Shown: in pieces, positions 1 to 41,974 of the stretch
Layout: the number at the start of each line of letters is the position of its first letter
Numbering within the stretch: position 1 is the first letter of the stretch
NCBI GenBank assembly: GCA_025786725.1
Contig: JAHLTZ010000074.1
Span: forward strand, 1 to 49,022
Origin: Syncephalis fuscata S228
Lineage: Eukaryota; Fungi; Zoopagomycota
Length of the DNA stretch: 49,022 bases
Reading direction: 5' to 3'
Notes under the pieces: generated by a model
Databases searched by the model: none
The model's input: only the letters and a program-made list of their open reading frames with translations
What the model was told of the DNA's origin: nothing
Position numbers and translations under genes: made by a program

Positions 1-2570
1 AAAAAATCGCCAAAAATTTATCCAATGAATTAAAAATCAAAACATGCAAAAAGTGCCGTTTTTTGTATGGAGGTCCAACTCCGCGTATTTTTCACGCATT
101 CCCACGATTTTTGGCGATTTTTAGCATATCAGGATCGACGCGCCTGCTTCTTGCGGTTCGAACAAGTGGCACCGTGTATTTTTAGGACAAGTATCCGTGG
201 AATTAAAAATACGGGGAGTTGGGCCGTTTTTCCCAAAAAAATCCGACAAAAATCCAACAAAAATCGACCAAATATACGGCTAAAAAGTTAACTAAAAGTT
301 AACTAAAGTTAAGTAAAAAGTTAAGTAATATTTGACTAGAAATGTAAGGGTATCCTTGCTATTTTGTTAATAAATATAGACTAAAAGTTAACTAAAGTTA
401 AGTAATTAGTTAAGTAATTAACAAGTTAACTAAGTGTTAAACGGTTATCATTACCATTAGTTAATTATTAACTAATTAACTATTACTTAACTTTATTAAC
501 TTTTAGTCTATATTTTATATCAAAAATAGCAAGGGATACCCTTACATTTCTAGTCAATATTACTTAACTTTTTACTTAACTTTAGTTAACTTTTAATTAA
601 CTTTTTTAGCCGTATATTTGGTCGATTTTTGTTGGATTTTTGTGGATTTTTTGGGAAAAACGGCCCAACTCCCCGTATTTTTAATTCCACGGATACTTGT
701 CCTAAAAATACACGGTGCCACTTGTTCGAACCGCAAGAAGCAGGCGCGTCGATCCTGATATGCTAAAAATCGCCAAAAATCGTGGGAATGCGTGAAAAAT
801 ACGCGGAGTTGGACCTCCATACAAAAAACGGCACTTTTTGCATGTTTTGATTTTTAATTCATTGGATAAATTTTTGGCATTTTTTTGAATATATAGGTCG
901 ACGCACATATCATTGCGGTCCGAACGAGTGGTCCTGTGTATTTTTAGAGCAATATCCGTAGAATTAAAAATACGCGAAGTTCTAGTTTGCTGGTTATAGG
1001 GGATATTTAGGATTTCGTGAAATATGCCACTATAACTAGTCATCAAACTTCCCGTATTTTTAATCTACGGATATTGCTCTAAAAATACACAGGACCACTC
1101 GTTCGACCGCAATATATGTGCGTCGATCTATATATTCAAAAAATGCCAAAAATTTATCCAATGAATTAAAAATCAAAACATGCAAAAAGTGCCGTTTTTT
1201 GTATGGAGGTCCAACTCCGCGTATTTTTCACGCATTCCCACGATTTTTGGCGATTTTTTAGCATATCAGGATCGACGCGCCTGCTTCTTGCGGTTCGAAC
1301 AAGTGGCACCGTGTATTTTTAGGACAAGTATCCGTGGAATTAAAAATACGGGGAGTTGGGCCGTTTTTCCCAAAAAATCCAACAAAAATCCAACAAAAAT
1401 CGACCAAATATACGGCTAAAAAAGTTAATTAAAAGTAACTAAAGTTAAGTAAAAAGTTAAGTAATATTGACTAGAAATGTAAGGGTATCCTTGCTATTTT
1501 GTTAATAAATATAGACTAAAAGTTAACTAAAGTTAAGTAATTAGTTAAGTAATTAACAAGTTAACTAAGTTGTTAAACGGTTATCATTACCATTAGTTAA
1601 TTACTTAACTAACCATTAACTATTACTTAACTTTTAGTTAACTTTTAGTCTATATTTTATAGTCAAAATAGCAAGGGATACCCTTACATTTCTAGTCAAA
1701 TATTACTTAACTTTTTACTTAACTTTAGTTAACTTTTATTAACTTTTTAGCCGTATATTTGGTCGATTTTTGTTGGATTTTTGTCGGATTTTTTGGGAAA
1801 AACGGCCCAACTCCCCGTATTTTTAATTCCACGGATACTTGTCCTAAAAATACACGGTGCCACTTGTTCGAACCGCAAGAAGCAGGCGCGTCGATCCTGA
1901 TATGCTAAAAATCGCCAAAAATCGTGGGAATGCGTGAAAAATACGTGGAGTTGGACCTCCATACAAAAAACGGCACTTTTTGCATGTTTTGATTTTTAAT
2001 TCATTGGATAAATTTTTGGCGATTTTTTGAATATATAGTCGACGCACCATATCATTGCGGTCGAACGAGTGGTCCTGTGTATTTTTAGAGCAATTATCCG
2101 TAGAATTAAAAATACGGAAGTTCTAGTTTGCTGGTTATAGGGGGATATTTTAGGATTTCGTGAAATATGCCACTATAAACTAGTCATCAAACTCCCGTAT
2201 TTTTAACTCTACGGATAATTGCTCTAAAAATACACAGGACCACTCGTTCGACCGCAATAATATGGTGCGTCGATCTATATATTCAAAAAAATCGCCAAAA
2301 ATTTATCCAATGAATTAAAAATCAAAACATGCAAAAAGTGCCGTTTTTTGTATGGAGGTCCAACTCCGCGTATTTTTCACGCATTCCCACGATTTTTGGC
2401 GATTTTTTAGCATATCAGGATCGACGCGCCTGCTTCTTGCGGTTCGAACAAGTGGCACCGTGTATTTTTAGGCAAGTATCCGTGGAATTAAAAATACGGG
2501 AGTTGGGCCGTTTTCCCAAAAAAATCCGAGAAAAATCCAACAAAAATCGACCAAATATACGGCTAAAAAA
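1..2570. repeat. Tandem array (period ~1.14 kb) of foldback units: arm forward / loop1 / arm reverse / loop2, about 2.3 units visible
   Basis: Arm ...GTATGGAGGTCCAACTCCGCG...TATACGGCTAAAAAG occurs forward at ~1-430, ~1046-1565 and ~2190-2570, and reverse at ~465-980 and ~1600-2120. Loop1 (GTTAAACGGTTATCATTACCATTAG) is at ~436 and ~1573. Loop2 (TCTAGTTTGCTGGTTATAG...CTATAACTAGTCATCAAACT) is at ~981 and ~2122. Both loops recur in the same orientation. Confidence 0.95.
2190..2503. repeat. MITE-like terminal module with ~85-bp imperfect internal inverted repeats (present in every arm of the array)
   Basis: AACTCCCGTATTTTTAA..CTACGGATA..CTAAAAATACAC..CCACTCGTTCGACCGCAA..GCGTCGATC (2190-2275) pairs with GATCGACGC..TTGCGGTTCGAACAAGTGG..GTGTATTTTTAG..TATCCGTGGAATTAAAAATACGGGAGTT (2419-2503). 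Confidence 0.8.
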
Positions 2571-5500
2571 GTTAAGTAAAAAGTTAAGTAATAATTACCT
2601 AAAATGTAAGGGTATCCCTTGCCATTTTGACAATGAAATATAAATCAAAAGCTAATCAAAAGTTAATTAAAAGTTAATTAACTAGTTAATAATCAGTTAT
2701 CTAAAAATGTAAGGGGTACTCTTTGCCATTTTGATAATAAAATATAAAATAAAAAGTTAATTAAAAATGTATTAACTAGCTAATATTAATCCAGTTAATA
2801 ATTAATTAATAGGTGGTTTTTCAGCTTTATCTGAGAAGTCAGTTGCTAAAAATTTGCATTGCAGATTGGACAAATAAAATAAAAGTTAATTAGCTAGCTA
2901 ATAATATTTTATTTAATTTAGTTAATAGTTAATAGATTAATTAGTTAATTAGTTAATTAGTTAGTTAATGGTGGTTGTTGTTTAATACTTAATTATTCTA
3001 GTCAATTAATAGTGATTGCCGTTTAATACTTGTCAATTGGTTAACTAGTTAATAGCGATTGTTGTCTAGCACTAGTAATTAATTAACCTAGTTAATAAAT
3101 AGTAATGGCCAGCTAAGATTAGTCAATTACCTTTAGTTAACAATAATTTGTTTAATATTAGCTAATAGTTAATTAATTAATAAAGTGGTTTTTCAGATCG
3201 ATCTGAAAAGTTAGTTGCTAAAAGTTTTGCTCTGTAGATTGGACAGATAAATAAAATATAATTAATTATTAATAATTGGTGTTTAATAATTAGTTAGCAA
3301 TAATTTATCTAATACTAGTAATTAATTAGTTATCAATAGTATATTTAATATTGGTTAATTGCCTAATTACCTAATAATGACAGTTGTTTAATAGTTAATT
3401 AATTATTCTAGTCAATAGTACTTGGTGTTTAATACTTGTTAATTAGCTAACTAGTTAATAATAATTGTTGTTTAATAATTAATCAATTAATTTAGTTAAT
3501 TAGTAATGATTGCTATTCAATACTTGTCAACTAGTTTAGCTAAGAGTAATAGCCAGCTAACATTGGTCAATCAACTAGTTAGTTAATAATTCGTTTGATA
3601 GTTAATTAATCAGTCAATTGGTTAAATAATGTCACCGATATTATGGTTAGTGTATTGATGTTATTAATAATATATGATTGTGTATTAAAACATTGGTGCT
3701 AGGCGATGCACAAATGCTTAATAGTGTATATGCTGGATACATCCAAAAATAATGGTGCTAGCTATTGCATGATCATACCAACTGTGCCAATTGTTAACAT
3801 TGTGTGTACAATTGCATATCCATCAGCGGTAATATATTGCTGTATATTAGTTAATCATATTACTTGTTAAGACTAGCACCTATAAATGCTGTGTTAATGC
3901 ATTGACCATGCATGACACGCTAATGTCTAGTGACGCAAATGATACTAACATTAATGGCCAGTCGTGACTATGTCACGCCAATTAGCAGTCAGTGTGCCAG
4001 TGCTGTTGTTGGTCAATGCAATAGATCACTTATACGTAATTGCCAGCATAAATAGCATTGCATAGCAACCTGCAGCTTTAATGACATGATAAATACGTAG
4101 TACTATATTGCAAATTCTGCAACATCAGCTTCAGCAATTATGGCTAAACTGACTAATGACTATCTACATATTATTAAATACATTAATACAACTCATTTCC
4201 ATGTATAACATGTCGTGTAACTCTTGCAAATGATAGTAGAATTAAGTATACAATCATCATGGATAACAGCTGTTATATCATTAGTGGGCCTTGTAACATT
4301 AATTCATTAGCTAAATAAAAATAACGCTTACTAAGTGTATTGTATGGTTAATGTAGTGCACAATATGTACATCAGCAGCAATCATTGCTATACTACAGAC
4401 GCCAATGACTACAATACAACATTGCAATCAATCCATCATTGTAATATATATATAAACAAGCATAATGGCTACTGTTGTTAACACCATTAGTATATACAAT
4501 GTAGTCAATGCAATTGTCGCAGTTCCATGTAATGATACATCAGTAAATTGCTGTAACACTGGTGTTATTATTACAACGTATGGTCATTTGTGTGTATATA
4601 GCTGACTATACGTATGTGCAACTGGATCATCCATTGTTTAGTACAGTGGCCATTATGTTTGCTACATGTTGATGTATCATTATATAGTGTATAAATAACT
4701 GCGTATAGTTTGCAATGAGTTGATTAATAATATTAGGCCATTGTATGTTAATGGCTAGTACATATAACATTCATGAATTAAAGTACATTAACGTTGTTGA
4801 TGACGTTGGCGTTTATATTAGCGGCATGTATAGCACACAATACACTCGTACATGGCGATGTGCGCTGTTTATACCATGGCCATCGTATTGCTGTGTAGTA
4901 GTCACGCATTGATGCATTGTAAACAGCACATTAGTAGCATACAAGTTGCCATTATACATAGCTATAATATATGTAAAATGATTAACATATCAATACTAAC
5001 AATAGAAGGAATACATAAACAGCCTGTAAACAAACATTAATATTATAACAAAGTATGTGTATAATTGATTGCGCAGCTATATATTACGGTAATTTTTAAT
5101 ACAAAAATTGATGGCCATTGGCGCAGATAACGCTATATGTAATACTTAGTACATGCGTTAGTAGCTTAATACTGTCGTACGTATATTAGCACTAACTAAA
5201 AAGCCAGAAACTATACTAGCATACTATCGGCTGTAATAATGCATCAATCAGCTATACGTGTACCGATACTAATTGCCACATTGATCAGTCGTGCCATTGA
5301 TCAGTGAACAACAACATACTGTGGCTAATTACGGCCAATAGTTGTAGCTGTATAGCAGCAACAATCATCGGTAACGTTAACAACGAAATCAGCTGTAAAA
5401 TATGTGATTATTAGTCGATATTAATTAGTGGTATTGCGATAGAGTCATAATGACACCAATCAGTATTGGATAGCAGTATTGATATCGCAATGTATATGTT

Positions 5501-7000
5501 CGACATCAACCAACTGTTAAATAACAGATATACTGGCATATGTATTGTCAATGTGCTAATCACTACTGATGGTTTTATCTGGTTAGTCAATAGCTATTAG
5601 TACACATATCATTATGCATGACCAGCAATTACTGACTATTATAACTGATAAAAATGGCAAAAATGCTTGTTACAATTATTTTGCTTGATCCACGGTTTTA
5701 CAATAGTCAATATTACTATTACCAATCAACAATAGCAGTATATATAGATATACAGCAATTATATTACCGAAGCTGATTGTTGATAGTTGCTATTGTGCAT
5801 GTAATTGCTAATAAAACATTGCCATTTCTGATTAAAACTATTGGCTGCTTAATAGTAGCTAACATACATCTGGTTAGTAGCATTGTATTAATTTATTTGT
5901 GCGTAAATAAATGTCGTACTACTTGCCAGCTGGTTAATAAACCAGCTAATATAGCATTGATGGAATGTCATATATCACTAGTAACTAGTGGCTGTATATA
6001 ACATATAGCAACATGTGGCGTTGACGTGCACAAAACGTAATTGGGCATATATTAGCAATAGCCATTAATATATTATTGATTATTTGTATGCATATCATAG
6101 CATTGTTATTATAACTTATAAGTTTTGCAAACAACCACCAGTTTATGTCTTTAATAAGCTTATTGATAGATGAAGACAAACAAAATGCACCAAGTGTTTA
6201 TGTTATTTGTAGATATGCTGCAAATCGACAAATATTAATAACAGCTTCGCTATTTCTGTTACTAAATATTATTAATAACTGGTTTACTATTTTCAGCGAT
6301 CAGTATTAGTATGCATATTTACATTATCAATCAACAATACAGCAACAATAACGTCAATTACGGCATTTATTAAACAGCATGTCATTTTTGTCATCGATAT
6401 AGATAGTAACTTTTTGTTAATTCTTAGCTGTTGCACTGAAATATACGACATTATTTTATAGTGATACTAAGTTGTATAAATATAAAATTTTAACTATTAG
6501 TATCAGTAGCTGTGTTATGCTGATGGCGCACGCAGTATATTTAGCTCTAGCTACTGGCCAGTAATCAGTAATATACGATAAACAGATAGTGCTAATGTAA
6601 TCATGTAATTAATTGATGGCAATGTCGCAGATTAATTAACCTATAACAAGCCGCTATCGATATCGTACTTTATTTGATTAATAGACAATCGATTAATATA
6701 ATGAGGACTATTAAACTGGAAAAATATTGGTAATGTATTAATGCTAATTCGTAATTAGTAGTATATTTGCTTGACAAAGCGCCAATATACCATCATATTA
6801 GTTATTGTTAAGCGGCTAATACGACTAGCTAACTTGTATACTTGAATACTATTTAACCCACTGTTTAATATTGTTCTTCAATATTTAGGTAAATATTATT
6901 AGCATAGCATTGTCAATTAAGTAGTGTTGTCTGTTATAGCAACCAGCAACAGTATTGAGCGCTATTATAGCCCATTAACTATATAGTTTTCTATACATTA
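2190..7000 (+). repeat. Repeat family R, copy 1 (terminal module + TTAATTAG-rich segment S ~2570-3625 + degenerate segment D from ~3660); inner end approximate
   Basis: 3000-3610 is nearly identical to the reverse complement of 33546-34170. 3670-5100 and ~5850-6000 align more loosely with copies 2-4, e.g. GTGTGCCAGTGCTGTTGTTGGTCAATGCAATA at ~3992 and ~36346, and CTACTTGCCAGCTGG at ~5919 and ~37698. Confidence 0.85.
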
Positions 7001-7834: not shown

Positions 7835-10032
7835 TTAGTTTTTAGTATGTGGCGATGTATTGTGTGCGATATAGATGTCGTCAACGTTAACACCGGCACT
7901 TTTGCAAGCCAAGCGAACCCATGACTTTAGCCAAATATCGTGGCGTAGTGAATGGTCAACCAAGTCGCGGCATCGCTCAATCTGTCCAACACGAGCTAGC
8001 GCAACAATCCATGTCGATAAATGGAAGCCATTAAGCGATACTTGGACTGTGGCCAAATCGGCCTCAATAACCGCTAGCGAGTTTGCATCGCGTCCAACAC
8101 TACACGCTATAAATAGCTGAGTAATCATATTAGGTGTGAATACAATACCTAGATGCAGCGATTGACGCCAAAGATCGAGTGCTTCGGTGGCACGACCACG
8201 TCGCGCATAGGCCCGTAGTAGCGCATAAATCATTTCATTTGGCAGTAAGGAGTAGCGATGCAGATGGGCTACACGCGAGAATAGCCATTGCACTACGCGA
8301 ATCTCGCCTCGTCGAGCAAATGCCATTAGTAGTGGCCGGTGCACCTGATTAGCAAATTCAATGCCATTTTGGAATAGCATTTTTCGCCAGGCTCGTAACG
8401 CAGCACTAAGATGACGGGCCCGTGCATAAGCAATCAAGAGAGTGATGGCAGCCACGACGTCAAGCTGATTTGTTTTTAAAAATGGCTTTAGAATGTCGAT
8501 AGCATCGCGGTGATGGCCATACTGCGATCTTGTATAGGCCCGAATCGTTTTGTATTTCAATCCTTCGGTCAAAAAGCGCTCGCGCACTTCTCGATGAAAT
8601 TGCTCACTCATTTCTATTTTACCCGTTAAACCGAGGCCATAGTAGAGTGCTCCGTAGCCAACAATATCCGGCTCATGGCCACCACCGACCATTTTTGCGT
8701 AATAATCAAGCGCCAACTCTTGATTGCCGCCTTTAAAAGCCCGATCCATTAATGAAGTGTATGTATACTGGTTTGGTATAATATCCATACGTTGCATTTC
8801 CTCGAATAGACGCTTATCCTGTCCAAGGACCAATGTACACTCTAGTTGCCTATGTTGCGAAGGCGGTGGTCGATCTCGCCACGGCTCTATTGATATTGAA
8901 TCACGTGGCGGCAGTGGCGTTGCATTAATAAGCACCGTATATGAAACAGTATTTTCAGGTACATTGTTCTGCTGCATAATAGCACGAAACTTGGCCACCA
9001 GCTCAGTATGGCCGGCTTGTGCTGCTGCATGCATAAGTGTCGTATATGTGTAGTGATTAGGCTGAGTTGCTGCCATTTCATTCGTATTATTGGTCATGGT
9101 CTGGTATATTTGCAGCATTTGAGCAAAATTATCCTGGTGTTTTGATAATAGCCGTAGCAATATGTTGTAGGTTGTGGTATTAGGCTTAATGTGCTGTCTA
9201 TTCATTTCGTTCAATATTAGCGAGACAAGCTTGTAGTCAGTCTCGCCAAAAGCATTTAACATATGATTATAGGTAACTATATTAGCAGTGCGACAAATAC
9301 GCAACACCCTTAGAAATGTCCTCCACAATTGACTAAGCTGTCGGTGCTGACTATAGAACCATATAAGCTGGTTGAACTGGCGAAGTGTCGTAAATTTGAT
9401 ACCTTGATCGCGCATCCGTCCTAGAACACGAAAGCCCAAAGCTAAACTGCTTGACGATGGATGTCGATTAATTTTAAGCAATAACGCTGAAAATTCATCT
9501 GGTTGTGACAGCAATTCGATATCTTTTCTATTTAACTTTATACGAGAGCGTATTTGGTCAATGCAAGTGGCACAGCATTAATTGCTTCTTTGTAGCTTAT
9601 CATTTTGTTGGCACCCATCGACTCTAACATGCTCTCAATGTAGTTGACCAGTTCAGGCGATAATTTTGGTAGTTCTTCGTTAGAATAGCCATGTTCTGTA
9701 GTGTTTTTATCTGCACTATAAAAATATTGGGTCGGTGTGGGTCTCAGTGTGGTGAATGGGCGCGGTTTGTCGTATAAACGTGTAGGACGTGGTGAAGCAT
9801 AAGATGGATTCAGAAACAATGACGTTGCAAGTGGCGATGGCTGTGAATGATCTCGCACCGCCAATATTCTGTAGCTTGATCTAGTGCTTGTTAGGCAAGT
9901 GCGCGTTGGACTTGCTCTTGGCTGTAGATCCGTGTTGAAAGAAGGTGGAGCGGCTCTAGATCTTGCTGTACAGCCGGCCAACTGTAGTTTCTGTGCACAG
10001 TCTGTGCAGATGCGGCCACCCAACTGCCGCAT
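7835..10032 (-). CDS. Pentatricopeptide-repeat (PPR) protein, probably mitochondrial RNA-binding; one frameshift near 9560
   Basis: Repeated PPR motifs (ANIVTYNHMLNAFG, PNTTTYNILLRLL, PNHYTYTTLMHAAAQAG, PNQYTYTSLMD, PDIVGYGAL). The R/S-rich N-terminus (9538-10032) joins ...DQIRSRIKLNRKDIELLSQP if one base is restored. Confidence 0.85.
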
Positions 10033-10478
10033 TCAAAATAATATGCTGTATACAGCAGTAGGTAAGTATATACTATTGCAGATTATATTGGCGCTATTAC
10101 TACAAATAATATGCATATGCGCCGCAAAGCGTAAAGATAGAGAAAAAGAAAAGAACGCGTCGCAGCACTATTATTTAGGCTCCTATAGATTCTAAAATGA
10201 AAGCAATAGCAATAGCAATAGCGTACCTCTTCTACGCTCTAAACAGCCGCCTACGCATACACTTTGTCAAACGCGCAGTACGCGTAGCAGAAACGTCTTA
10301 AAACACTGCTACTGTTATAAAGAGAGAAAACTAAAAGTAAATTGACGTAACGTACGAATAAAGTGCAGAATATAGACTTTTTACCAATCTACGATTTATA
10401 CTTTGATCAACCTAATAGCCACAGTTTACTTTATTTCTCTACTAACTAAACTACTGCCACTACAAGCACAACAGTTCA

Positions 10479-11504
10479 ATGTAAGCTAGTTCTTGTTACT
10501 TGTAATCGTCAACTGATCTGATTATAGGTCTGAATACTGGAAATCACAAGGACGCTACTTTTGTAATTACTGTAAAATATATGTAGCCGAGAATGCTATT
10601 GTAAGTAAATAGGACCTATACTTACCATGTCACTAAGTAGCCTTATTATTTATAGAGCCGAAAGCATCATGAGGATGGTAGAAAGCATAAAGGAAATGTA
10701 GAGCGTTTTCTACGTGATGTACATACACGTACTCGAAAAGAGAAGGAAGATGCCGAGTATATGGCTAGAGAAATGGCTAAAATCGATCAAGTAAGTTGTA
10801 TAGTGACGATTAATAGCTAGTAAATAGAATAATAACCAGTATATTATATTATATTATATAGGCAGCACATGCTAAATACAATCTAGACTTGGGAAGGGGA
10901 AGTGTAGTGCATGGATCAGATGTAGCGATAGCAACTATGGGTGCACCATCACCATCAGTAGTATCTAAATCTAAGGCTTCGTTATCAACGGCAAAAGTAG
11001 AGACATCATCGAGAGCTCGGGACAGGACAGCAGCAGCAACAACACAAGTACAAGCACAAATGCCTTTCGACTACCAGAAGGTCAACAAGTAGGAGCGGTC
11101 GGTCAATGGAGACGTGTAGAAGAGCCCACAGCCACCATAGACTCTACCACTGATAAAAGCGATGGCGGTGCACGAAAAGCCGGTCCCAACCTGTTGTGGG
11201 CTCATCGGTGGCCAATGATGCACTGTTAGAAGATGAAGAGGAGGAAAAAGCACAGATCGAAATCAATCCAGATGATCCAGATGATTTACGTAATTTTAAA
11301 GTGGTTGAAAAGACCCACCCTACAGAATTCGATGCTAAAGAAGATATTAATTATCGTAATACTGGATTAACCAGTACTTTTTCAACTAAAGTTAAAAAAG
11401 AAGAGGAAGATGAAGAAGGAAGCAGTGGTGGTGGATCACTATTTAAAAAGAGAAAAGCCCCCAACTTAACTACAAATCGATCACGTAACATTAGACGTAA
11501 ATAA
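10479..11504 (+). CDS. U1-type (matrin) zinc-finger splicing factor, WBP4/FBP21-like; 4 exons (10479-10480, 10528-10600, 10656-10790, 10862-11504) with two frameshifts in exon 4
   Basis: Spliced translation MSEYWKSQGRYFCNYCKIYVAENAISRKHHEDGRKHKGNVERFLRD. GT-AG introns. GAVGQWRRVE motif and basic C-terminus FKKRKAP...RNIRRK. Confidence 0.8.
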
Positions 11505-22200: not shown

Positions 22201-25200
22201 CCAACACCATCTAGCAGAGTTAAACTACTATCGATACAGTCTCTCATTATTACGCCTAATGGTCTATCGGTAACACCGTCTAATCTGTCGTATATTTCAG
22301 TATCAGCGGCATCACTTTGTTTGTCAGTTCCCCACAAATATCGATTGGCCGATGTTATTGATAATGTGAACAACACAATTAAATCGGCCAAGTATTTATG
22401 GGCCCGTGTGTTAACGGGTGGACCGCCACCACATACCGATACACATGTAGACTTACCACGACTAGAGATTCGTATTGTCGATATGGTGTTTGAGTTGTTG
22501 GATTCGCCGTTTGAAATGGCCCTGGCGCGTATATTCCGTCTAGGTGTACCAGAACAGCGTGAACGATTGGTGCGTGAAACGATTCTAGAGAGTAAATTGA
22601 CTGCACTAGAGACCGATACGGCACAGACAGAGCCTCCAGTGGATCCAGCAGTGGCCCGTTACTTATTACTAGAGTATAATGCTAGTCGATGGGCATCCAA
22701 AATACATAATGCTACTACATCCAATACGGGATCCACTGATGTGCCATTAATGCAAGTAACGGCGCGTGATATGTTTATCAAACTGGGTCCACCGTCATTT
22801 GGCCGTGATCATTTGGCAGAATGGGTCTATACATTGGATCAATGTACACCAGCCGACTATATCTACGACTTGGGCATTCTAATGCACTTATCATGGTCAG
22901 TATCCGAGCTGACAATGCAACTACGCGACTTTCCACAGCCTCTAATTCACTTTCCACCCTCAATCAACGCAAACGATGGTGGAGGTGAACCGAGTTTTGT
23001 GTGGGAAGGTGATTTGGCAGTGTTGGAACAGGATCCATTGCCGTGTGCCTTCCGGTATGTTAAGGTGCCCATTACGGATAGAGTGACGGCGATATCGGCC
23101 CGTACTATATCACCGGTCAAGCTATTTACCGATGCCCATATATCGGTGCGTAATGGCGGCGAAACGCGTATCTGCTGGGGACCATGCATTCAACCGACCC
23201 TCGCCGAACTGAGCCATGTTATCGATACACTGACCGATCCCAGTCCCGATCCCAGCCCAAGTCTAGGTTGGTGGGATAAATTGCGACTTGTACTGCATGG
23301 CCGATTACGTCTAGACTGGTCACCACAGCAGTCGAATAATAATGACGAAGGTGGTGAATTGCATGTTAGGTTGCAGGGTGGACAGCATCCATGGGAGCGC
23401 AATCTACGCACCGCTGGACTAGCACTCGTATGGCGTGATAGTGTCAGTCTTACCTTAGGTGGTGATCAACGCATACTTGAATTCCGCAGTAAACAATTCA
23501 CCATAGCCATTCCCGATATCAGTAGATCCATAGAACGTAATAATACCAACAATACCAATCATAGTGGTGGTTCAGAGTTTGCTAAAGTATTATTGCAATT
23601 GGCGGGTGATGTGGCTATTGGTATTGCTGGTCGACTTGAACGACCACCTGATGTATCAGAATGGGTGCCGCATCATGCCATTATTACGCGTATGTCTCAT
23701 AGTATCCCCTCCAACATCACCGTAAGTTATTGCCATCATTAATATGGCTATTACTAATACAATTTATTAGAATTACGATAGTTTTAAAGGATTTAGAGCG
23801 GGCAAAGTCCATTTACAATTTATATTTGAAGCCCATCAAATGATCAATTCGATGTTAAGTAACAGTGTTCATTTAACACCCAAAACAGTACAGCACTTTT
23901 TGTCATTTATTGAGTTATTTGGGGCTGAAAAGTCACCGCCCATTCGATTGGGTCCATTATTTCCGGATATTACGAGTAAACCACCCAATTTTGGTAAACA
24001 TTTATCTAGTTTAAGATTTACATTTGGTCTATCGCCATTCACTCTTGGCTATTTCATAAGAGATGAGACCACCACTACAACCACGGTTAATAGACCGAGA
24101 AGAGGTACAACGAATACTGCCCATGACCATCATCAGCATCACCATCATGATCCATCATCTGATACGGCCACTGTGAACGATAGTCATAGCAATCATGGTG
24201 ACAACTACCATAGTGATGGCGATAATGATCATGACGATGTTGAAGAACGACATATTACACTAAGAGGTGTTAAGGCACGGGTAGAGCGATTTGATTTTGA
24301 ATTAGTTATGGAGCAGTATGAAAAGTCAGCATCTGAACTACCAGAGAACTCTATGATGAAGGCCGGATTTGGTATACAAGATGCGATGATTGATTTGATT
24401 GCCCTTGATGCACGGTCAGTTACCGTGGAGCAGGTAGAATATGATCTAGTCTACCAAGAGCCACTCGATATTGAAATGCTTCTAGAAGAGATGATGGCCA
24501 CTCATCATGATGGAGAAGGTGGCGCAGAAGATGGTGGCGATATAGATGATGAACAGCATAGTCATGCAACTGTTGAAGAATTGGCTGATGATGATAGCAG
24601 TAAAAAGAAGCAGCAACAGAACAAGAAGAAGAAGAGGGAGCGTGAAGAAGAGAAGCGTGGTATACTAAGATCGTGGATGGATATGGCTGATTTAGAGGAT
24701 ATTGATATGCCGCGTATCTATAATGTAGGGCCCACTACAGTAACTCCATTTATCTATGCCCCCCAAGCTATCTATTTCAAGCAAGGCAAAAGCAGTACTT
24801 AACGAATAGACTATCGATGGCCGGTAAAGGTAAGCAGAACAAATAGATATAGATGTAGATAAATGGCCCGTATTAACAATAACCATCATATGGATAGATG
24901 TACGAGATATTCAGTTGAATATATTTAGAGAACGGCAATCGGTATTACAAATGGATATTGCTCGTCAATCTAGATTATTAAATGAATTACATGAACATAA
25001 AAGCACTGTCATTAATACAACTGGATCAGAAAGATCACGTCGACGCACTGTAATGATTAATATTTAACTATTTAACTATTTACTAATTACATTTATTTAT
25101 TTATTAGGAAATAAGTCGGTTAAAGGCCAATTTAAAGATTGCTGCTCAACAATTGGCCATTATTGAACGACACTTGGCTGAACTTGAAAGTAATGATGGC

Positions 25201-28200
25201 GAACAACAACAAGTCCAGTATTTGGACGCCATTCTACTGATCCATCCTCGTCTACTAATCGTCCTATGAATGGCGATGACGATGACCAAGCCTCTAATCT
25301 ACAAGATTCATTTGATCATCGTTGTGCAGTTCATAATGCGCATATTATATGGAATATTGAACTACGTAATCAAATATTCCGATATACTCGCCTACTTACC
25401 CGTCAACATGCCATTGGTTACTATATGACCGCCACTGCTGTCAAAGCCATTAGAGATACCACACGTAAAATTATACGCAATAATGAACGGGCTCTTTCTA
25501 TTGATCATAGCACTGCACTATCACCACGCCGTCAAAGAAATAGAGACCGCTCATTAACATCGCTACTTCAAGATGGTGAAGATGAAGGTGGCGAAGATGG
25601 TGAGGAGGAGGAGGAGGAGGATGACTCGTTACAGTATCCCTATAGTCAAGGAGCAGGTCATCATACACCAGAAGGATATTCACCAGAAGATTTAATACGT
25701 CAACTATTAGGTGATGATGCACCATCTACAACAATGCAGACATTAGAAGAACGAGATAAACCACCATCTAGTGGCTATAACAACAACGATCATAGTGACA
25801 ATGAAGAAGATGACGATGATCATAGTAGTATGCACCCTACCGTGCCTGATGACTATGAAGTAGATCATAGTTTATTGGTTATGTTTACATATCCACAAAT
25901 AAGTCTACAAAGTGGCAATGACAATTCAACGCTGGCCTTTTTATCAGCAGAACAGATTCAGATTGAGTCATTATCTATTCTAGATCCATTATCTGAACAT
26001 ATTGCCTCTAATCACTTGGTGAAGACACGAACTATTCTGCATGTTAAAGACGTTCAAGTATTTGTGGCCCATCGAGTGCACTGTATGGCTCGACCACGAT
26101 CATCACTGGCCTTCCAGTATGGATCCAGTCATGGTAGATGGCAGGACTGGTTGCCGATTGATGTATTAGTCGACTATGATGGTGAATCGGGTCCATTCCA
26201 ACGTATTGTATCGCGAGCATCAGCGACCCTATACCATGACAAGAGGAATCCGCTAAGATTTACTGCTCAAGCAAGCGATGAATCGGCCGAGGGCAAGTCT
26301 ACACAGACCCAACGGCGATATGACCAATCGGACACTGAAGACGATAGTGATCAAGGAGAGACGGTGACCGATACGCTATTTATACACTTGCCATCATTGG
26401 TATTTAGTGCCGATGCACTACAATTTGCGAGTATTTGGTCAGTGGCCAATGATTTATTGGCCTATCGTGAGCCAGATGAGCATTTGGATCAGATTAACAA
26501 CATTCTACTTGCTTCAGAGTCTAATGATTACGCGGTGATTGTTGATACTATCTGGAGATGCAAGAGAAGATTCAAGGCATTGAACAAGTTATTGAACGCT
26601 ATTTATTAGATCGTAAACTATGGCAGTCATCAGATGCAGTGGCCGATCGATATAGTGAAGAATTCACCCGATTGGTGGATCAACATAGATCGATGCGAGA
26701 AGAATTGTATGTTATTGTGACGACAATGATTCGATCACAGCAATTACGAGAACGGCGTCGTCAAACAACAAAGACCGTCATTCGTACCGTGATGACGGCC
26801 GACAGAGTTGTATGGTTAATGGTCGATGACGATTCAAAGGATCCATTGTGTGAATGTACACTATATCACGCTAATCTAGTATGGGTCATTGGTGACGATC
26901 AATCGAGTAGCAATACGCTGGAGATTGATAGATTAGAAGTGATTGATCGTATGCCCAAAGCGTATTTTGTTGAACTATTGTATCCACTATTGCCGGAGGG
27001 TCAAATCATTGACTTTACAAGGCATAAGATGTTAAGAGTGCATTGGCGTGAGCTGGCACCGGTAGCGGGTATTGCCGTCGTTGAACACTTTGAAGTAAAC
27101 TTGTTCCCGTGTATTGTTCGACTGACCCAAGAAGTGGGGCGGCGTATTATAGCCTATGCTTTTCCTGAAAAGCAGCGATTACGCCTCCATCAAGAGAGTG
27201 CACTGCAAGCGAAGTCAGTTGCTCAATATCGAGCCACCGTAGGGGGAGGAGCGGTAGGAGGTGGTGGAGTGAGTGATGTGTTAGAGGAGGAGCCATTTCC
27301 GCCATCACTTGCGCTACAAGCGGGTGATTCGGCCACCTCAGTACTACTAGACACTGAGCACGATGGCTGTCACAGCCTACTCCGCGAAGAGCCTGAAGCG
27401 ATTGATGACCCTTTACTGTCCACCACTAGTAATATGGGTGTTGTTAAGACAAGGCCGGCGCGTCGATTAACACTAATGGCCGATGATGACACGATGATGG
27501 CTAAACGGCGCCGATCCAAATCAATTATTAGATCGGCCACGCTTATTGGTAATCGACAGTACCGATCACTAACCCAAATGAGAACAAGAGCATCTGAAAA
27601 TCGTACATTTATTTACGTTAAAGTACCCAGCACTCAACTATGTCTAAGCTATCGAGTAAGTAGTATTAAATAGTGTTAGTGTATAAATACTGATTTGTTG
27701 TTTTGTTATAGGGTCGTAAGGAAAAGGATATTTCCAACTTGAATGATTTCCTATTTACACTGCCGACATTTGAATACCGTAACAAAACATGTACATCACT
27801 CGATCTACTACTCCAAGTAAAGAAAGGTAATAGTAATTACGATAGTAGTGTTGGTATTAATGATCATGATTATTGTAGATATTATGTGGCGGTTATTGTC
27901 CCATACTGGTTCGTTGGTCAAGGGTAAACTATTTAATAGTAAGCCAAAACATTTAGGTGGCGGTGGTGGTGGTGGTATGCGTAGTCACGATTTAATGGCG
28001 CTTAATACCATGCCTATGCCATCACCTACCGATAGTTTACTATTGGCCTCTGCTTCTGCTTCACCGATAGGACCGCTTTCATCGGCCACCGGTAGTTCAC
28101 AGCATTCAGATTTTATAATGAATCGGGCCCGTGCTTTACTTCATGTAGAAACCGGCACGACCCTAAAGAAGCGGCCATCGCTATTACTGCGTGCCCTCTC

Positions 28201-28501
28201 CACCCAAAGTGAAGAAGGCACCGACCGAACCGAATCTGAAGATGGCGATACCGATACACGAACCAGGATAGAAGAGGCAGCCGGAGAAGAAAAAAGTGAC
28301 CGTAACAGCAGTCATGGTATTGGTGGTATGGCATGTGAACGCAGTGCCTCCACCTCTAGTGTGCCACCTAGCAATAATAGTAATAGTAGCTCGTTACAGT
28401 CACCGTCGCACTTGCCGCCACCGCCTATTCGACGCAGCATATCAAATGACCAGAAATCACGTTTACTCTTTGGTAAATTGTATCATGCACATAACGATTA
28501 G
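19213..28501 (+). CDS. FMP27: Bridge-like lipid transfer protein BLTP2/Hobbit/KIAA0100 (FMP27 family), about 6 exons, several frameshifts
   Basis: N-terminal TM anchor. DPSPDPSPSLGWWDKLRLVLHG. Intron 23722-23770, then NYDSFKGFRA and SVHLTPKTVQHF. Apt1-type C-terminus WRELAPVAGIAVVEHFEVNLFP, QMRTRASENRTFIYVKVPSTQLCLSY, FTLPTFEYRNKT. Confidence 0.92.
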
Positions 28502-30059
28502 CTAGTCGTTGTTTTCGTTTAGAAAATAAATACTTTATTAGTTATTATTGTGAATATTATTAAAATAAATGGTTATTTTATTATTACTACTAGCTATAGT
28601 GTTTATGATTAGTGTATAGTATACACCTCATTGAGTGTATACCGCTTTATTGGCATAGCCATCTTATATTGCTTTAAATTAGGTATGATTATCCAAGTGT
28701 TGTTACTATCTATTTTCACTGTGCTACTGTACTTAATTGGATTATAATTACTAGCAAATACAGCTATACTTTTATAGCTATTTTATTACAGCAATAGTGT
28801 TAATAAAATGTCAAGTAGATGTAGAAAGCCATCTAGTTACCTGACTCGTATTAGTTTATTAAGCTATTACATTTAGCAAATTAGATATAAATATACACAT
28901 ATGGTTTATTCTAATTATTAATTTTGTTGCCCTGTTACATTAATACTAGCGATTTAATAGCAAATCCTATTGCGGTTTGATAATTAAATTAAGCATTTAC
29001 TTTACTCAAGACTAAATGCTAAATATTATTATTTACTAAATCATTATAATGATAACTATAGCACTGTCATTATTATATATAAATATATATAATAATACTA
29101 TCATAAATTTAAGCAAAAAGCAGCTATGGATAAAGCGTAGTTGTTTTAGCATATAGTTATAAGAAGTACTATGAATGTAGGATCAAATGATATAAACAGT
29201 GGATTTGAATCTTATTAATAATAAAAATAGTTCGAGTCAGGTAGATGTGTTGAATAACCTGTAGTTATAATACAATAAAATAATAATGGGGTAAATGTAC
29301 AATTATAAAGTTATTTGTTGTATAAATAAATGAGCAAAATGCATTTGGCTTTTAATAATAAACTAGAAACAACTAGCAACATTATGGATAGTGCCTGATG
29401 GCACAATAAAATAAGATATAATATGCAATGAAAAATATGTAAATAGTGGCATTGAAATTATAGTGAATATAGCTCAATGAATGACATGTTGTTACTGTTC
29501 TATAATTCCGGGCAGGGTCTTGTGAAAGTGTGACCAAGAGCTATACCATGTAATTGGATCACCAGTTAAAGTCGTATGTGATTGATTGCAAGAATAATAT
29601 ACCTATCAAATATTAGTACCGATTACTAGTAACAAATACCTATTACGACAATATGATGAGTAGCTACTTGTTAGTTATGAGTATATGAGCAGTCACCTAA
29701 ACTAATATGCTGGGCTAATGATGAAATACTACAAGGCATTCCAGTTCTATTATTAGTTGTGTTTACTATATAATGATAGCTTTATTCAATATCAATAAAG
29801 GAATAATCAAGTTTCTAGTCCAATATTATTTCTACTTAGTGTCATACAAGTTATTCAGTTTATTATAGCTAAACTGTGGTAATTAATGACCAATAAGGAA
29901 TAATTTTATTATAAAAGCAATATAACCAAACAACACATTGTATTCTGAGCATTAAGGTAAGCGTTAATAAGCATCAGAGATTAACTTTATAGGATAGCAA
30001 CAGGATAAGGTGTTGCTTGGTCATCTAAGTTGCGATTTCTAAAACAAGAAGCGTAACAA

Positions 30060-33000
30060 TGTGTTAAAAGCTATATTGAATAAAACATAATCAATGTATG
30101 ATAAGATGGTATATATTGGTATGAATATGTCATAAGAATAATTCGTATAAATAGTGGATATATGCATACTGGATAATAATCTACAATGATGAGTATTTAA
30201 TAGCTGATTCACATACCGTCTAGTTTCATGTTCAATATAACGAGTGCCATTTCAATCACGCAAATGTTATCAATTGTAGCCATCTAATCACTCAATCACA
30301 TCATAGTCTGCTGATAAGTTGCTTACTATTAATACAATAGCTTAATACGCATATTCAATTAAATAAACCAATGATGTTTCTGTTTAAATAAATGATGCAG
30401 CGTGTACCTATATAATGCAGCTGCTTATAATACGCTAATAATTTAATACAACTCATTAATTGAGTGCCATGCTATATTTGCTGTCTATTATATTGCTTGA
30501 TTTGCCAGTTAGCATAGTAATGGTATCAGTACTATTAGCAGTAATCGACAGTTGTATATGATAGCTTGTTGATACATCAATTGGCATAAAGTCAAATAAA
30601 CATACACATTATTGTAATCATGAAATACATAAGCCACTGCATGCTGAGTAGTGATCAGTATTAACAGCACCAATTGCTTTGCATAAAATACACAGCAATA
30701 CTACCATATATCTATTAGTCCAACATCACCAGCATGTTTTACTAGCTGTGGTCACAGTAGCATATTAATACACATCGACGTCTATTCGGCGCATCATATT
30801 GTCAATTGTAGCAATGCGACAGCCATCACTAGTGTAATCGTCGACACCACAATATACAGTCTGTGCTACATTGCTAAACACATATATGTACACAGCAATA
30901 ATACACAGCAATAATATTATTGGTAATGACTAGTAAAAAACACGGCTATAGTCAATTTGCTTAGCATACAGCATACAATATACGCTGTATTATTAAGCAT
31001 CGTAAATTGATACGCAGCAACACACAAATGTTAATTGCGCTTAAATTACATGCCAATAGCTATATTCCACCAATGCAATTAATACGCCAGCTATAATACC
31101 GACAACGTCAAACAACATAGCCAAATAATGGATACTACTAAAATAATATATACAACATCTAACAATAGCTAATTGGCTAATACTATTTAATATCAATAGT
31201 CATTGTCATACAAATCTACAACTAGCTATTTATTAATAGTTGATTACACAATGCCAGTATTAGTTTATGCAGTCATAATTGATTGTTGATAATTGCTGCC
31301 AATTTGCTAATTATATTAATCAACAGACATTATAGCCAATGCACCATTCAATAATATGTTGACATTTGGTATTATATATAAATATTGTGTGTGCACAATA
31401 GCACAATAATATACATTGCTAGACTGTCGTCTACATATGCTATGAATGGTGTGATACCTGTAGATGTTGGTTTGTTTATTGGTATTACTGATGGCTTGTA
31501 TTAAACATAACTAATGCTATTGGTATGCCATGTAGTTATGCGACATAAATGTTGGTTACCATACAGCTACTAACAATTATTAATGATGGCATTGATAGCG
31601 TCAATATGCGTTAATATAAAGTTAACAGCATCTGTGATTACATACCACACGGCACCTATTATAAGCAATAACGTGCTTGCGTTTATGTCAATAGCGGCCA
31701 CTGTAAGCTATTGACCATTCTGATACTATATGGTTGCATATAGCATATACAACTACTCGTTATTAATTGCTAGAAATGCGCAGTGTGCCATTATCTGCAT
31801 GTTAGTCAACAAGCTATAGCAATAGCATTGTATTAGCTGGTTCATTAGCCAGCTGGCAAGTAGTTTAGTATCCATTTACACATTTGTACGTTGCTGCAAT
31901 GCTAATATACACTGTATATTATTTATATAAATTGCCAATGTTATTAGCTATAAAATACAATACTTTACTAACAACTATGCACAATATTAACTGACAATTA
32001 ATTACGGTAATGTAATTGCTATTATTAATTGCTAATAGCTGATTACACACTATAGCATGTGTAGTAATAACTGCCACTTACCAGCTAGTATAGCTGCTGG
32101 CTTGTCAGATGTTGCTGATGCCGCACTATACCATTAGACTGTTGATACACTTGAACAATACATATGATGTCATCTGTACTAATGGTCGTCTATATTTGTA
32201 TTGACAGTAGTTGCAGTATATAGTACTGCATAATCAATTATACATGCACGTTGCTGCATTCCGTCAATTGCTAGTACAATACGTTAATTATTTTACATAT
32301 ATTGCAGGTAGATATAGTGGCAGCTTGTATGTTGTTAATGTGTTATTTACAATGCAGTAATGCAGTGACCACTATATAGTATTACAATGGCCATGATATG
32401 CAAAACACACACTGACATGTACCAGCTATATATTGTGTATCATACACGACGATAACACAAATACTAGCATTGACAACTATATTGATATGATTTAATTTAT
32501 TGAAGCTATATATATTGGCTATTGACATTCAATAGTACATTAATGTGTAGCAAGCATAGTCGCCATTGTGTCAGTTCATTTATAATTGAGTTGCACATAT
32601 TCATGGCTTTATTTACATATACAAATAACGATACGTTGCAATAATCACCCAGTATTACAGCCGTCTATTGACATAGCGTATACATGTAACTGTAGCAGTT
32701 ACACTGACCACATCGCATATACTACTGATATTAACAGCAGTAGTCATGATAGTAATTGGTATGTATTTTACAATGCTGCATTAATTGCAATGCCGAATTG
32801 TAAGCATTATCGTTTATAGTATGGCGATTGGTGCTGCTGATTTACGTACTATGCACTACACTAACCATGCAATACGCTTAGTGGCTGTTTTTGTGCAACT
32901 AACTTATCGGTGCTACAAAGCACGCTGGCAATATAGCAGCTGTTACCCATGATGATTGTATATTTAATTCTACTATTATTTATGTATTACACGACATGCT

Positions 33001-34487
33001 ATGCATGGAATGAGTTGTATTAATGTGTTTGATAATATGTAGACAAACAGCAACCAGTTTATACATAATTGCTGAAGCTGGTGTTACAGCGTTCGCAATA
33101 TATTACTACGTATTCACCATGTCGTTAAAGCTGCAGGCCGTTGTGCAATGCTATTTGTACTAACACATTACGTATAAGTAACGTATTACATTGACCAACA
33201 ACAGCACTGGCACACCAACTGCCAATTGACGTGGCATGCTCACGACTGGCCATTGATGTTAGTGCCAGTTATGTTACTAGACATTAGCATGCCATACATG
33301 GTCAATGTATCAACACAACATGTATAGATACAGCACTAACAAGTAACATGGTTAATTAATATACAGTAATATATACCCGCTGATGAATATGCAAGTGTAC
33401 ACACGATGTTAGCAGTTGATACAGTTGCTATAATTATACAATAACTAGCACCATTATTTTTGAATGTGTTCAGCATATATACTACCAAGCACTTGTGTAT
33501 CGTCTAGCACCAATGTTGTAATACACAATCATACACTTTTAATATTATTAATTAACTATCAAACGAATTATTAACTAACTAGTTGATTGACCAATGTTAG
33601 CTGGCTATTACTCTTAGCTAAACTAGTTGACAAGTATTGAATAGCAATCATTACTAATTAACTAAATTAATTGATTAATTATTAAACAACAATTATTATT
33701 AACTAGTTAGCTAATTAACAAGTATTAAACACCAAGTACTATTAACTGACTAGAATAATTAATTAACTATTAAACAACTGTCATTATTAGGTAATTAGGT
33801 AATTAACTAATATTAAATATACTATTGATAGCTAATTAATTACTAGTATTAGATAAATTATTGCTAACTAATTATTAAACACCAATTATTAATAATTAAT
33901 TATATTTTATTTATCTGTCCAATCTACAGAGCAAAACTTTTAGCAACTAACTTTTCAGATCGATCTGAAAAACCACTTTATTAATTAATTAACTATTAGC
34001 TAATATTAAACAAATTATTGTTAACTAAAGGTAATTGACTAATCTTAGCTGGCCATTACTATTTATTAACTAGGTTAATTAATTACTAGTGCTAGACAAC
34101 AATCGCTATTAACTAGTTAACCAATTGACAAGTATTAAACGGCAATCACTATTAATCGACTAGAATAATTGATTAATTAACCAACTAATTAACTAGTATT
34201 AAGTGCACTATTAACATCAACTATTACCTGAATTACTATTAGCTGGTTATTAATATTAATTAACTAATATTAAATAAATTATTAACTAACTATTAACTGG
34301 ATTACTATTAATTAATACATTTTAATTTTTAGTTTATATTTTATTATCAAATGGCAAAGGGTATTTTTTACATTTTTAACTAATTATTACTTAACTTTTA
34401 CTTAACTTCTAGTCTATATTCTATGATTAAAATGGCAAAGAGCACCCTTTACATTTTCAGATAATTATTAATTGACTTTCAATTAAT
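30060..34487 (-). repeat. Repeat family R, copy 2 (reverse orientation)
   Basis: ~30200-33430 is a near-identical reverse complement of ~36130-39360. 33546-34170 is a near-identical reverse complement of 3000-3610. 34320-34470 carries the AAATGTAAGGGTA..TTGCCATTTTG motif also seen at 2600-2735. Confidence 0.92.
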
Positions 34488-41970: not shown

Positions 41971-41974
41971 CGCG

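Follow-up and report, generated by a model that had tools for sequence, protein, structure and literature searches.

Mirror-symmetric satellite modules as the probable source of the inverted repeats around ordinary genes in Syncephalis fuscata

Six genes of the mycoparasitic fungus Syncephalis fuscata lie between two inward-facing inverted repeats, raising the question of whether they are the cargo of a mobile element or ordinary DNA that happens to be bracketed. The window analyzed here is the entire 49-kb contig that carries them (C344), a repeat-rich chromosomal stretch with three mirror-symmetric module sites (Table 1). The first-pass annotation described it as a chain of segments bracketed by inward-facing repeats, and this geometry holds. 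We show that the relevant unit is a module rather than the block of genes, and that the six genes are ordinary DNA between modules. Each module is a palindrome, so the DNA between any two neighboring modules is bracketed by inward-facing copies of the repeats S, J, and R. We consider it probable that the genes are bracketed through this symmetry of the modules rather than as a mobile gene cassette; mobility of the gene block is not supported.

Table 1. Features of contig C344.
Feature	Position	Strand	Remarks
P array	1–2690	.	~570-bp units of alternating orientation (1.14-kb inverted dimer); runs off contig start
P turnarounds	T1 centers ~443, ~1576; T2 centers ~1014, ~2155		Imperfect loops
S1	2691–3661	+	AT-rich minisatellite with 43/84–88-bp subrepeats; outer end faces P
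J1 + R1	3662–6027	+	J1 = 3662–3849; R1 = local flank
PPR-repeat protein gene (BDF19DRAFT_456807)	7838–9616	-	
zf-U1-type gene	10525–11504	+	By orthology to S. plumigaleata gene with PF06220
AIM24-family gene	11764–13366	-	By orthology
VHS/GAT-domain gene	13422–15353	+	By orthology
Member of large lineage-specific family	16630–18300	+	65–73% DNA identity to dozens of loci; no Pfam match
Hobbit/FMP27 (bridge-like lipid-transfer protein) gene	19129–28507	+	Several exons; last exon = ORF 27848–28501
R2 + J2	30154–33544	-	J2 = 33357–33544; mirror copy of R3
S2	33545–34489	-	Outer end ~34489
5'-truncated LINE 3' fragment	34490–35468	+	LINE 34499–35459, A-rich tail; 9-bp target-site duplication on both sides
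S3 + J3 + R3	35469–39411	+	S3 to ~36100; J3 ~36013–36203; R3 36100–39411
Decayed dispersed repeats	39412–42817	.	ORFs without Pfam match; 68–72% DNA matches at many loci
R4 (partial) + J4 + short S4	42818–44451	-	J4 ~43948–44135; DIRS element interrupts outer S4
Intact DIRS-order tyrosine-recombinase retrotransposon	44452–48976	-	RT, RNase H, Dam-like methyltransferase, tyrosine recombinase (YR)
Resumed S-outer/P-like sequence	48977–49022	.	After DIRS insertion to contig end; compared directly with 34400–34430

A full module has the P satellite at its center, with S, the 185-bp repeat J, and a subfamily-specific flank mirrored on both sides; on C344 this flank is R. J is oriented toward P: all ten copies outside the window aim at a P array 80–750 bp distant, and the four within it aim at a P array (one copy), a LINE-filled center (two), and an S end interrupted by a DIRS element (one). 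The similarity shared between P and the outer end of S is limited to ~230 bp at ~78–80%. What had been read as empty mini-cassettes at 1046–2120 are units of P, which is a separate, genome-wide satellite, and two of the three proposed outer-end junctions (~1010 and ~2155) correspond to T2 turnarounds of this satellite. The T1 and T2 turnaround loops are imperfect, and each is present in both the flip and the flop orientation.

Arrays of P occur in about 10–13 places genome-wide, mostly at contig ends (contigs C201, C34, C320, C325, C311, C334, C102, C24, and C173, plus C344). The large contigs C201, C24, C311, C325, and C334 have a module at one end only, and on C320 it is internal. Units within these chromosomal arrays differ by 3–13%, and degenerate units flank the arrays. 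Outside C344, only the C320 module is covered from one flank to the other; its mirrored arms are 84% identical, and it is solitary, with no second module nearby. Beside it, the presence of three modules in 49 kb on C344 is unusual.

Flanks of different modules cease to be homologous directly after J in the case of the R copies, and at ~500, ~700, or ~900 bp in other subfamilies. We rejected the possibility that the module is a transposon with fixed ends, given that homology between subfamilies ends ~200, 500, 700, and 900 bp beyond J. The surroundings of the modules are AT-rich and ORF-poor over 4–8 kb. No ORF of the AT-rich parts matched Pfam, no tRNA genes or Rfam families were found in the flanks, and (TTAGGG)4 occurs neither in the window nor in the entire assembly, which does not speak for or against a subtelomeric location.

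The copies of R fall into two types. R2 and R3, a pair that faces away from the genes, are 97% identical over 3.3 kb, including a ~1-kb tract at 99–100%; R4 is 88–93% identical to this pair (R3/R4, 93%). R1 is 99.5–99.9% identical to positions 25583–28635 of contig C369 and ~80% identical to R2 and R3 up to ~4591. The R-S end of C369 probably faces R1 from the other side of the left P array. Arms across one module are 97–99.9% alike, the upper figure being that for R1 and C369 with this inferred adjacency, compared to 76–80% between the two R types. The gene-bracketing pair, R1 and R2, is the least alike (~80%).

This bears on the first-pass description of R1 (+) and R2 (-) as multi-kb inward-facing repeats. 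The two are indeed inverted copies, and their outer S tracts (2977–3610 versus 34185–33547) are 98.1% identical over 639 bp, far above chance. However, only about 2 kb from the outer ends can be aligned, most of it at ~80%: the next stretch (3662–4591 versus 33544–32621) is 79.7% identical over 932 bp, an additional patch of 140 bp is about 79% identical, there is no similarity beyond ~5010, and the inner ends differ. The distal edge of R2, at 30154, coincides with the end of a dispersed repeat of ~190 bp. The mismatches between R1 and R2 comprise 140 transitions and 41 transversions, a predominance of transitions that indicates real divergence rather than sequencing error. S1 at 2977–3610 matches S2 at 98% identity and the S of C369 at 98.8%; S2 at 33547–34310 likewise shares 98–99% identity with both S1 and the C369 copy of S, while its adjoining J and R are only 80% identical. 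From its sequence, this stretch of S2 looks like a conversion tract, and a 639-bp inverted tract at 98% next to flanks at 80% points to ectopic exchange between S1 and S2.

Mapping R across the genome, as had been proposed, did not reveal a genome-wide family: four copies are on C344, one is on C369, and full copies are found nowhere else. Three candidate identities for R were rejected. It is not a dispersed transposable element family, as beyond C344 and C369 only short mosaic fragments occur. Nor does it represent decayed DIRS copies, since R showed no nucleotide similarity to DIRS in the self-comparison, and neither did P or S. Using high TpA/ApT together with depleted (CpA+TpG)/(ApC+GpT) as the criterion for repeat-induced point mutation (RIP), R is not a RIP-degraded transposon either (substrate index 1.2–1.4, composite index near or below 0).

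Two of the modules contain retroelements at their centers. The third proposed outer-end junction, at ~34487, is real and contains a LINE fragment inserted exactly where the outer ends of S2 and S3 meet; the module there has no P array. The segment 34499–35459 shows 5' truncation, an A-rich 3' end, and a target-site duplication (TCCAGCTAA, read directly at 34490–34498 and 35460–35468), as expected of a non-LTR element. It is 92% identical to the 3' ~965 bp of reverse transcriptase-encoding copies on C177, C2, and C24, in which a 1708-aa RVT_1 ORF lies about 2–3 kb upstream.

These observations argue against the palindromic junctions being chimeras of assembly or amplification. Many contigs do terminate inside P arrays, and the array copies at the left end differ mostly by transversions and indels, as such artifacts might. 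However, the S2-S3 junction at 34.5 kb is genuine because the LINE and its target-site duplication span it. In addition, the arms differ by 3–20% with a transition bias, S2 and S3 are asymmetric, and the P-S-J layout is found on ten contigs. No public Logan unitig bridges the S2-LINE or LINE-S3 junction with at least 31 letters on each side, the unitigs being only ~100–480 bp long. We regard a chimeric origin as extremely unlikely. At 34.5 kb, the duplication likewise contradicts the earlier suggestion of inverted repeat-capped molecules joined in the assembly, and the transition-rich divergence of the arms argues against it.

An intact DIRS element closes the stretch at 35461–49022 that had been taken for a cassette without genes. 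The overlapping ORFs of this element encode reverse transcriptase, RNase H, methyltransferase, and tyrosine recombinase domains (PF00078, PF17917/PF17919, PF05869, and PF00589) with neither a protease nor a DDE integrase, and it accounts for the only RVT_1 match on C344 (46.9–47.4 kb). This RT-RH-MT-YR set is the one that defines the DIRS elements of early-diverging fungi (PMC3783388). DIRS elements are expected to have inverted terminal repeats and an internal complementary region; the repeat seen here is a 132-bp direct one (48842–48973 and 44634–44765; element positions 4–135 and 4212–4343), with no obvious inverted terminal repeats. Copies that are 99.9% identical are present on C201 and C34; all three lie within P or S-outer sequence, and at least two adjoin a T1 turnaround. 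The AT-rich palindromic centers are favored landing sites for retroelements, as the LINE at 34.5 kb and the DIRS element at 44.5 kb show. The DIRS element, to which P, S, and R bear no similarity, travels with the module as a passenger and did not give rise to it.

The genes between R1 and R2 were compared exon by exon, via a reference or tblastx. The PPR, zf-U1, AIM24, VHS/GAT, and Hobbit genes are single-copy orthologs of a contiguous block in S. plumigaleata that lies among ordinary genes; the first-pass annotation had recommended such a comparison of copy number and synteny. The Hobbit segment is present once in the genome; a 1537-aa exon in S. fuscata compares with a 2861-aa protein in S. 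plumigaleata. The remaining gene belongs to a lineage-specific family that is often tandemly clustered, and a member is missing from the syntenic S. plumigaleata block; a homolog word search with its ORF gave no match. As noted previously, the block lacks a transposase and a Starship-type DUF3435 captain; Pfam scans of its ORFs detected no transposase, reverse transcriptase, or recombinase.

On a 560-kb contig of S. plumigaleata (JAIXMF010000015.1), the gene order is Hobbit-AIM24-VHS/GAT-zfU1-PPR-arylesterase-SAC3-STX6-TPR, and S. pseudoplumigaleata retains VHS-zfU1-PPR. C344 carries the same five block genes in a rearranged order that is at least two inversions apart; the breakpoints of these inversions (AIM24-VHS and Hobbit) are internal to the block rather than at R. 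On either side of the block, synteny breaks off precisely where R1 and R2 lie. Arylesterase, which the five genes adjoin in the sister species, and TPR have their S. fuscata orthologs on C338, a contig without matches to P, S, or R.

A gene block with such ends could be cargo carried by a giant non-autonomous element, either a foldback or a composite transposon, that has R-S ends and is mobilized in trans. The inward-facing repeats, the loss of synteny at both block ends, and the activity of tyrosine-recombinase elements in this genome would all fit. However, R1 and R2 are 80% alike and have no common inner terminus, the block is single copy, and R occurs outside C344 only on C369. Furthermore, the flank homology of the modules is staggered, an identical bracket surrounds a gene-free stretch, and no recombinase is found inside the block. 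No target duplication of the block is definable because its outer ends run into the P array or the LINE. Taken together, these findings render the cargo-carrying foldback of the first-pass annotation very unlikely.

Comparison with known cargo-bearing elements leads in the same direction. In Drosophila, FB elements and FB-bounded giant segments show that long subrepeat-built inverted repeats can bracket host genes. C344 resembles them in having such repeats around host genes with no transposase between, but R1 and R2 lack common termini, and the block occurs once and shows neither an insertion polymorphism nor a target duplication. Module symmetry explains the bracket. Starships are cargo-carrying elements of Pezizomycotina, and the block is similarly a segment of tens of kilobases with host-like genes. 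In contrast to them, S. fuscata belongs to a different phylum, the boundaries of a C344 element are not definable, and Pfam scans of all large ORFs of the contig found no DUF3435 captain, the sole recombinase (PF00589) being that of the DIRS element. The evidence removes the reading that this early-diverging fungus has a novel type of foldback element carrying genes; the bracket follows from the geometry of palindromic modules. What remains is a defined genome-wide module in which an alternating satellite with flip/flop turnarounds lies between mirrored flanks that probably undergo arm conversion. The assembly breaks at this module, DIRS and LINE elements are drawn to it, and breakpoints of synteny coincide with it.

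Under the module explanation, modules would have multiplied locally through mirror-image segmental duplications that vary in reach. Gene conversion from arm to arm may keep the arms of a module alike, S tracts may have been swapped between modules, and inverted units would permit the recombination that flips the loops. Modules would then coincide with evolutionary rearrangement breakpoints, and the gene block would not move as a unit. Primate sex-chromosome palindromes and inverted repeat-mediated DUP-INV structures are large palindromes whose arms undergo conversion. The C344 modules share with these their multi-kb mirror arms around a spacer and a tract at 99–100% within arms at 97% (R2/R3), near-identity of the kind achieved via gene conversion; they differ in that their arms consist of non-coding repeat debris, with a satellite or a LINE as spacer.

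A further possibility, compatible with the module explanation, is that the 30-kb gene block is passively invertible, with recombination between S1 and S2 flipping it either within the population or repeatedly in evolution. A 98% S1/S2 tract inside 80% flanks implies recent exchange, mutual or with C369, and the flipped P loops show that inverted units of this family recombine. At least two inversions separate the gene order from the one in S. plumigaleata, and synteny stops at R1 and R2. Nevertheless, the breakpoints of those inversions lie within the block, the assembly holds one arrangement only, and public unitigs are too short to span the 639-bp tract. On balance, we consider such inversion rather unlikely. 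The loss of synteny at R1 and R2 is equally expected had the block moved as a unit.

Could the modules be centromeric? Descriptions of centromeres in Zoopagomycota are, to our knowledge, lacking, and the few AT-rich inverted-repeat modules found here would be obvious candidates. The modules might represent inverted repeat-type (peri)centromeric DNA that accumulates retroelements, with C344 a piece of a complex centromere enclosing a few genes. Clusters of DIRS-1 mark the centromeres of Dictyostelium; DIRS elements accumulate at P modules, and the C344 element resembles DIRS-1 in inserting repeatedly into one kind of repeat. Comparable systems are the homogenized inverted-repeat (HIR) centromeres of Candida tropicalis (PMC4741521) and fission yeast-type centromeres. 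The S. fuscata modules similarly have a kb-scale core with 2–5-kb inverted repeats and tandem subrepeats in the arms. They are also similar across loci, with the mirrored arms of one locus the most alike (R2/R3 at 97% and, given the inferred adjacency, R1/C369 at 99.9%, versus 76–80%), as reported for C. tropicalis, which suggests homogenization both within and between loci. The small number of loci (about 8–10 arrays), their position at one end of large contigs or internally on C320, and the AT-rich, ORF-poor surroundings are also consistent with a centromeric role.

In contrast to C. tropicalis, however, the S. fuscata core is an alternating-orientation satellite or is absent. One module is entirely without a P core, and three module sites are packed into 49 kb, two of them separated by five housekeeping genes. 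A centromeric identity thus seems doubtful, and the module explanation given above is preferred.

The organization of P itself invites comparison with the rolling-hairpin intermediates of parvoviruses and poxviruses, in which concatemer junctions join hairpin-ended replicons. As in such concatemers, P units are arranged head-to-head and tail-to-tail, with imperfect turnaround loops in flip and flop. Unlike them, P forms chromosomal arrays of units that differ from each other and are flanked by degenerate ones, and no replication gene is present. It is conceivable, if improbable, that P modules are functional rather than inert debris: they would be either the first inverted-repeat centromeres of Zoopagomycota or relics of rolling-hairpin replicons with turnarounds recognized by the DIRS recombinase, and under both readings, gene blocks would be actively inverted or relocated as the mirrored flanks around them recombine. 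The flipped P loops are explained equally well by recombination between adjacent inverted units.

Self-comparison of the window confirmed that the copies of the repeat flank R on either side of the six genes, R1 (+) and R2 (-), oppose each other as the first-pass annotation had described, but these are alignable over only about 2 kb. The long, closely matching pair is instead R2 (30154-33457) with R3 (39411-36100), which is 96.9% identical over 3.3 kb and oriented away from the genes. Because most differences between copies are transitions (58 versus 16 transversions for R2/R3; 140 versus 41 for R1/R2), they reflect real divergence, neither read error nor amplification chimera. Sequence indices gave no RIP signature, the genome being merely AT-rich outside exons. 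Genome-wide searches (29.4 Mb in 371 contigs, the window being the entire 49,022-bp contig C344) confined this flank subfamily to four window copies (R1 to R3 and an incomplete R4) and a single further copy, at one end of C369. Pairwise identities over the common first ~930 bp show that the gene-bracketing pair is the least alike. At the distal edge of the R2 and R3 arms (30154-30350 and 39215-39411), the arm end falls together with the end of a dispersed repeat of ~120-190 bp that has many copies genome-wide (C318, C320, C1, C74, C157, and others). A second, different dispersed repeat starts immediately outside R3 (39412-39615).

Features of the window and identities between R copies
Feature	Position	Strand or orientation	Detail
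P array	1-2690	alternating	~570-bp units = 1.14-kb inverted dimer
T1 turnaround	centres ~443, ~1576		imperfect, ~25 nt
T2 turnaround	centres ~1014, ~2155		imperfect, ~70 nt
R1/R2 tract	2977-3610 vs 34185-33547	inverted	98.1%
R1/R2 tract	3662-4591 vs 33544-32621	inverted	79.7%
R1/R2 patch			140 bp, ~79%
PPR gene	7838-9616	-	Pfam; annotated BDF19DRAFT_456807, Syncephalis fuscata
zf-U1	10525-11504	+	exon-by-exon tblastx
AIM24	11764-13366	-	exon-by-exon tblastx
VHS/GAT	13422-15353	+	exon-by-exon tblastx
Sixth gene	16630-18300		large lineage-specific family
Hobbit/FMP27	19129-28507	+	Pfam
DIRS-order retrotransposon, intact	44452-48976	-	RT, RNase H, Dam-like methyltransferase, tyrosine recombinase
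R1/C369			99.9%
R2/R3			94% over first ~930 bp; 97% over full 3.3 kb
R3/R4			93%
R2/R4			88%
R1/R2			80%

The empty "mini-cassettes" previously noted at the left of the contig are units of a genome-wide satellite, P. Arrays of 1.5-6.4 kb with 92-97% identity occur on C201 (two), C34 (two), C320, C325, C311, C334, C102, C24, and C173; most lie at contig ends, indicating that P breaks assembly. The turnaround loops T1 and T2 appear irregularly in both orientations within one array (flip/flop), in the window and on C311, C325, C34, C201, and C320. This pattern is compatible with recombination between neighbouring inverted units that turns the loops around, or with hairpin-based copying. C102, C24, C173, and C320:97200-100400 share 96-98% identity over more than 3 kb, from the P array through into the flank. 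These four stretches are recent copies of a single module arm, or else the same locus assembled more than once.

Every P array is adjoined by S, an AT-rich minisatellite of variable length with 43- and 84-88-bp subrepeats; a degenerate fragment of a P unit makes up its outer ~230 bp. Beyond S lies J, which is conserved and 185 bp long (3662-3849 in the window). Of the J copies found elsewhere in the genome, all ten are oriented toward a P array at a distance of 80-750 bp; in the window, J1 points to the left P array, J2 and J3 to the centre at 34.5 kb, and J4 to the DIRS-interrupted end of S. Past J, homology is subfamily-specific: it breaks off immediately for the R copies of the window and runs for ~500, 700, or 900 bp in other groups, and these staggered ends therefore leave no transposon-like common terminus. 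Modules are surrounded by 4-8 kb of AT-rich DNA in which, DIRS elements excepted, no ORF reaches 180 aa. The sole other module spanned with both flanks visible, on C320, has arms mirrored at 84% and is solitary in a 110-kb contig.

The module at 34.5 kb lacks a P core. Here, positions 34497-35460 match the 3'-terminal ~965 bp of elements found on C177, C2, and C24 with 92% identity; those elements carry a 1708-aa RVT_1 ORF 2-3 kb upstream of the matched part. The fragment has an A-rich tail and TCCAGCTAA on both sides (34490-34498 and 35460-35468); it is a normal 5'-truncated LINE with a target-site duplication, and before its insertion S2 and S3 abutted each other at their outer ends. The outer-end-to-outer-end junction proposed near 34487 is thus genomic, since the duplication spans the S2/S3 contact, and the alternative that the assembler had joined separate molecules at this point falls away.

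At the right end, S4 is split in its outer part by a DIRS element with the domain set that defines the order, i.e., RT, RNase H, methyltransferase, and tyrosine recombinase (PMC3783388), and with a 132-bp direct repeat; the final 46 bp of the contig return to S-outer sequence. Copies 99.9% identical to it lie at C201:365579-370104 and C34:2476-6906, the latter without ~80 bp (window 46885-46963) present in the other two. All three copies sit inside P or S-outer sequence, and at least two have a T1 turnaround no more than a few tens of bases from a junction. These insertion sites suggest that the tyrosine recombinase may prefer the palindromic satellite as a target.

Identity along the R2/R3 palindrome is 66-81% in S, 99-100% for ~1 kb mid-arm, and 83% at the distal edge, a profile that indicates arm-to-arm conversion. 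S2 (33547-34310) is 98-99% identical to S1 (2977-3610) and to C369:28000-28760 while the adjoining J and R are only ~80% identical, with a sharp switch exactly at the J/S boundary. From this we infer that S tracts have been exchanged between modules; the match resembles a tract that was recently converted or exchanged between the S of different modules. C369 terminates within S, pointing outward, and possibly supplies the mirror arm that is missing on the far side of the left P array. The same small contig, which holds the R1-like copy, also contains a 3.6-kb inverted repeat (C369:1-3639 vs 7857-11510, 99.1%) around a pol of Ty3/Gypsy type with RVT_1, integrase zinc-finger, and rve domains.

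Gene comparison with sister species and a copy-number search show that the block genes are ordinary single-copy genes. A 560-kb contig of S. plumigaleata carries the order Hobbit, AIM24, VHS/GAT, zf-U1, PPR, arylesterase, SAC3, STX6, TPR, and S. pseudoplumigaleata has VHS, zf-U1, PPR. Compared with S. plumigaleata, the window shows one inversion of the AIM24-VHS pair and another of Hobbit. The sixth gene gave no Pfam match and a blank word search; its family forms tandem clusters on C35, C90, C316, C190, C13, and C257 (65-73% DNA identity), and it occupies the breakpoint of the Hobbit/VHS inversion, whereas the S. plumigaleata block lacks it. Just upstream of Hobbit (18456-18720) is a ~260-bp MITE-like dispersed repeat that matches more than 15 loci at 74-81% identity. 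C338 carries the orthologues of arylesterase and TPR, and had no P, S, or R match in genome-wide searches. The motif (TTAGGG)4 has zero occurrences in the 29.4-Mb assembly; the telomere repeat of S. fuscata, a mycoparasite belonging to the Zoopagomycota, is either different or unassembled.

Sister-species synteny stops exactly at R1 and at R2, and this loss at both block ends is what would favour the earlier proposal of a mobile, inverted-repeat-bounded gene cassette. However, since each module is a palindrome, DNA between two modules is necessarily bracketed by inward-facing S-J-R copies, as also holds for the gene-free stretch at 35.5-44.5 kb. A chain of cassettes and a row of palindromic modules are therefore one geometry in two descriptions. 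The identity pattern, the solitary C320 module, the polarity of J toward P, and the staggered flank homology together point to the module as the evolving unit. The cassette interpretation is largely deflated; mobility of the block is not supported. The S1/S2 tract, at 98% identity, could plausibly allow the block to invert; public runs, which are short unitigs, contained no junction-bridging sequence. Evolution by modules would involve their local duplication in mirror image, gene conversion among S tracts as well as from arm to arm, and flipping of loops when neighbouring inverted units recombine.

In their palindromic repeat architecture, the modules form a variant not described before. Foldback-bounded giant transposons and rolling-hairpin concatemers each have one feature in common with them, as Starships do with the block, and tests of membership failed for all three. 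The closest described architecture is that of the inverted-repeat centromere in Candida tropicalis, in which a 2-5-kb core is flanked by 2-5-kb inverted repeats, with arms most alike within a locus and homogenised across loci (PMC4741521). The palindromic modules are worth testing as centromeres. Their small number, AT-richness, attraction of retroelements, and location at ends of large contigs agree with that architecture; the presence of three sites within 49 kb, with housekeeping genes in between, and of one coreless site goes against it.
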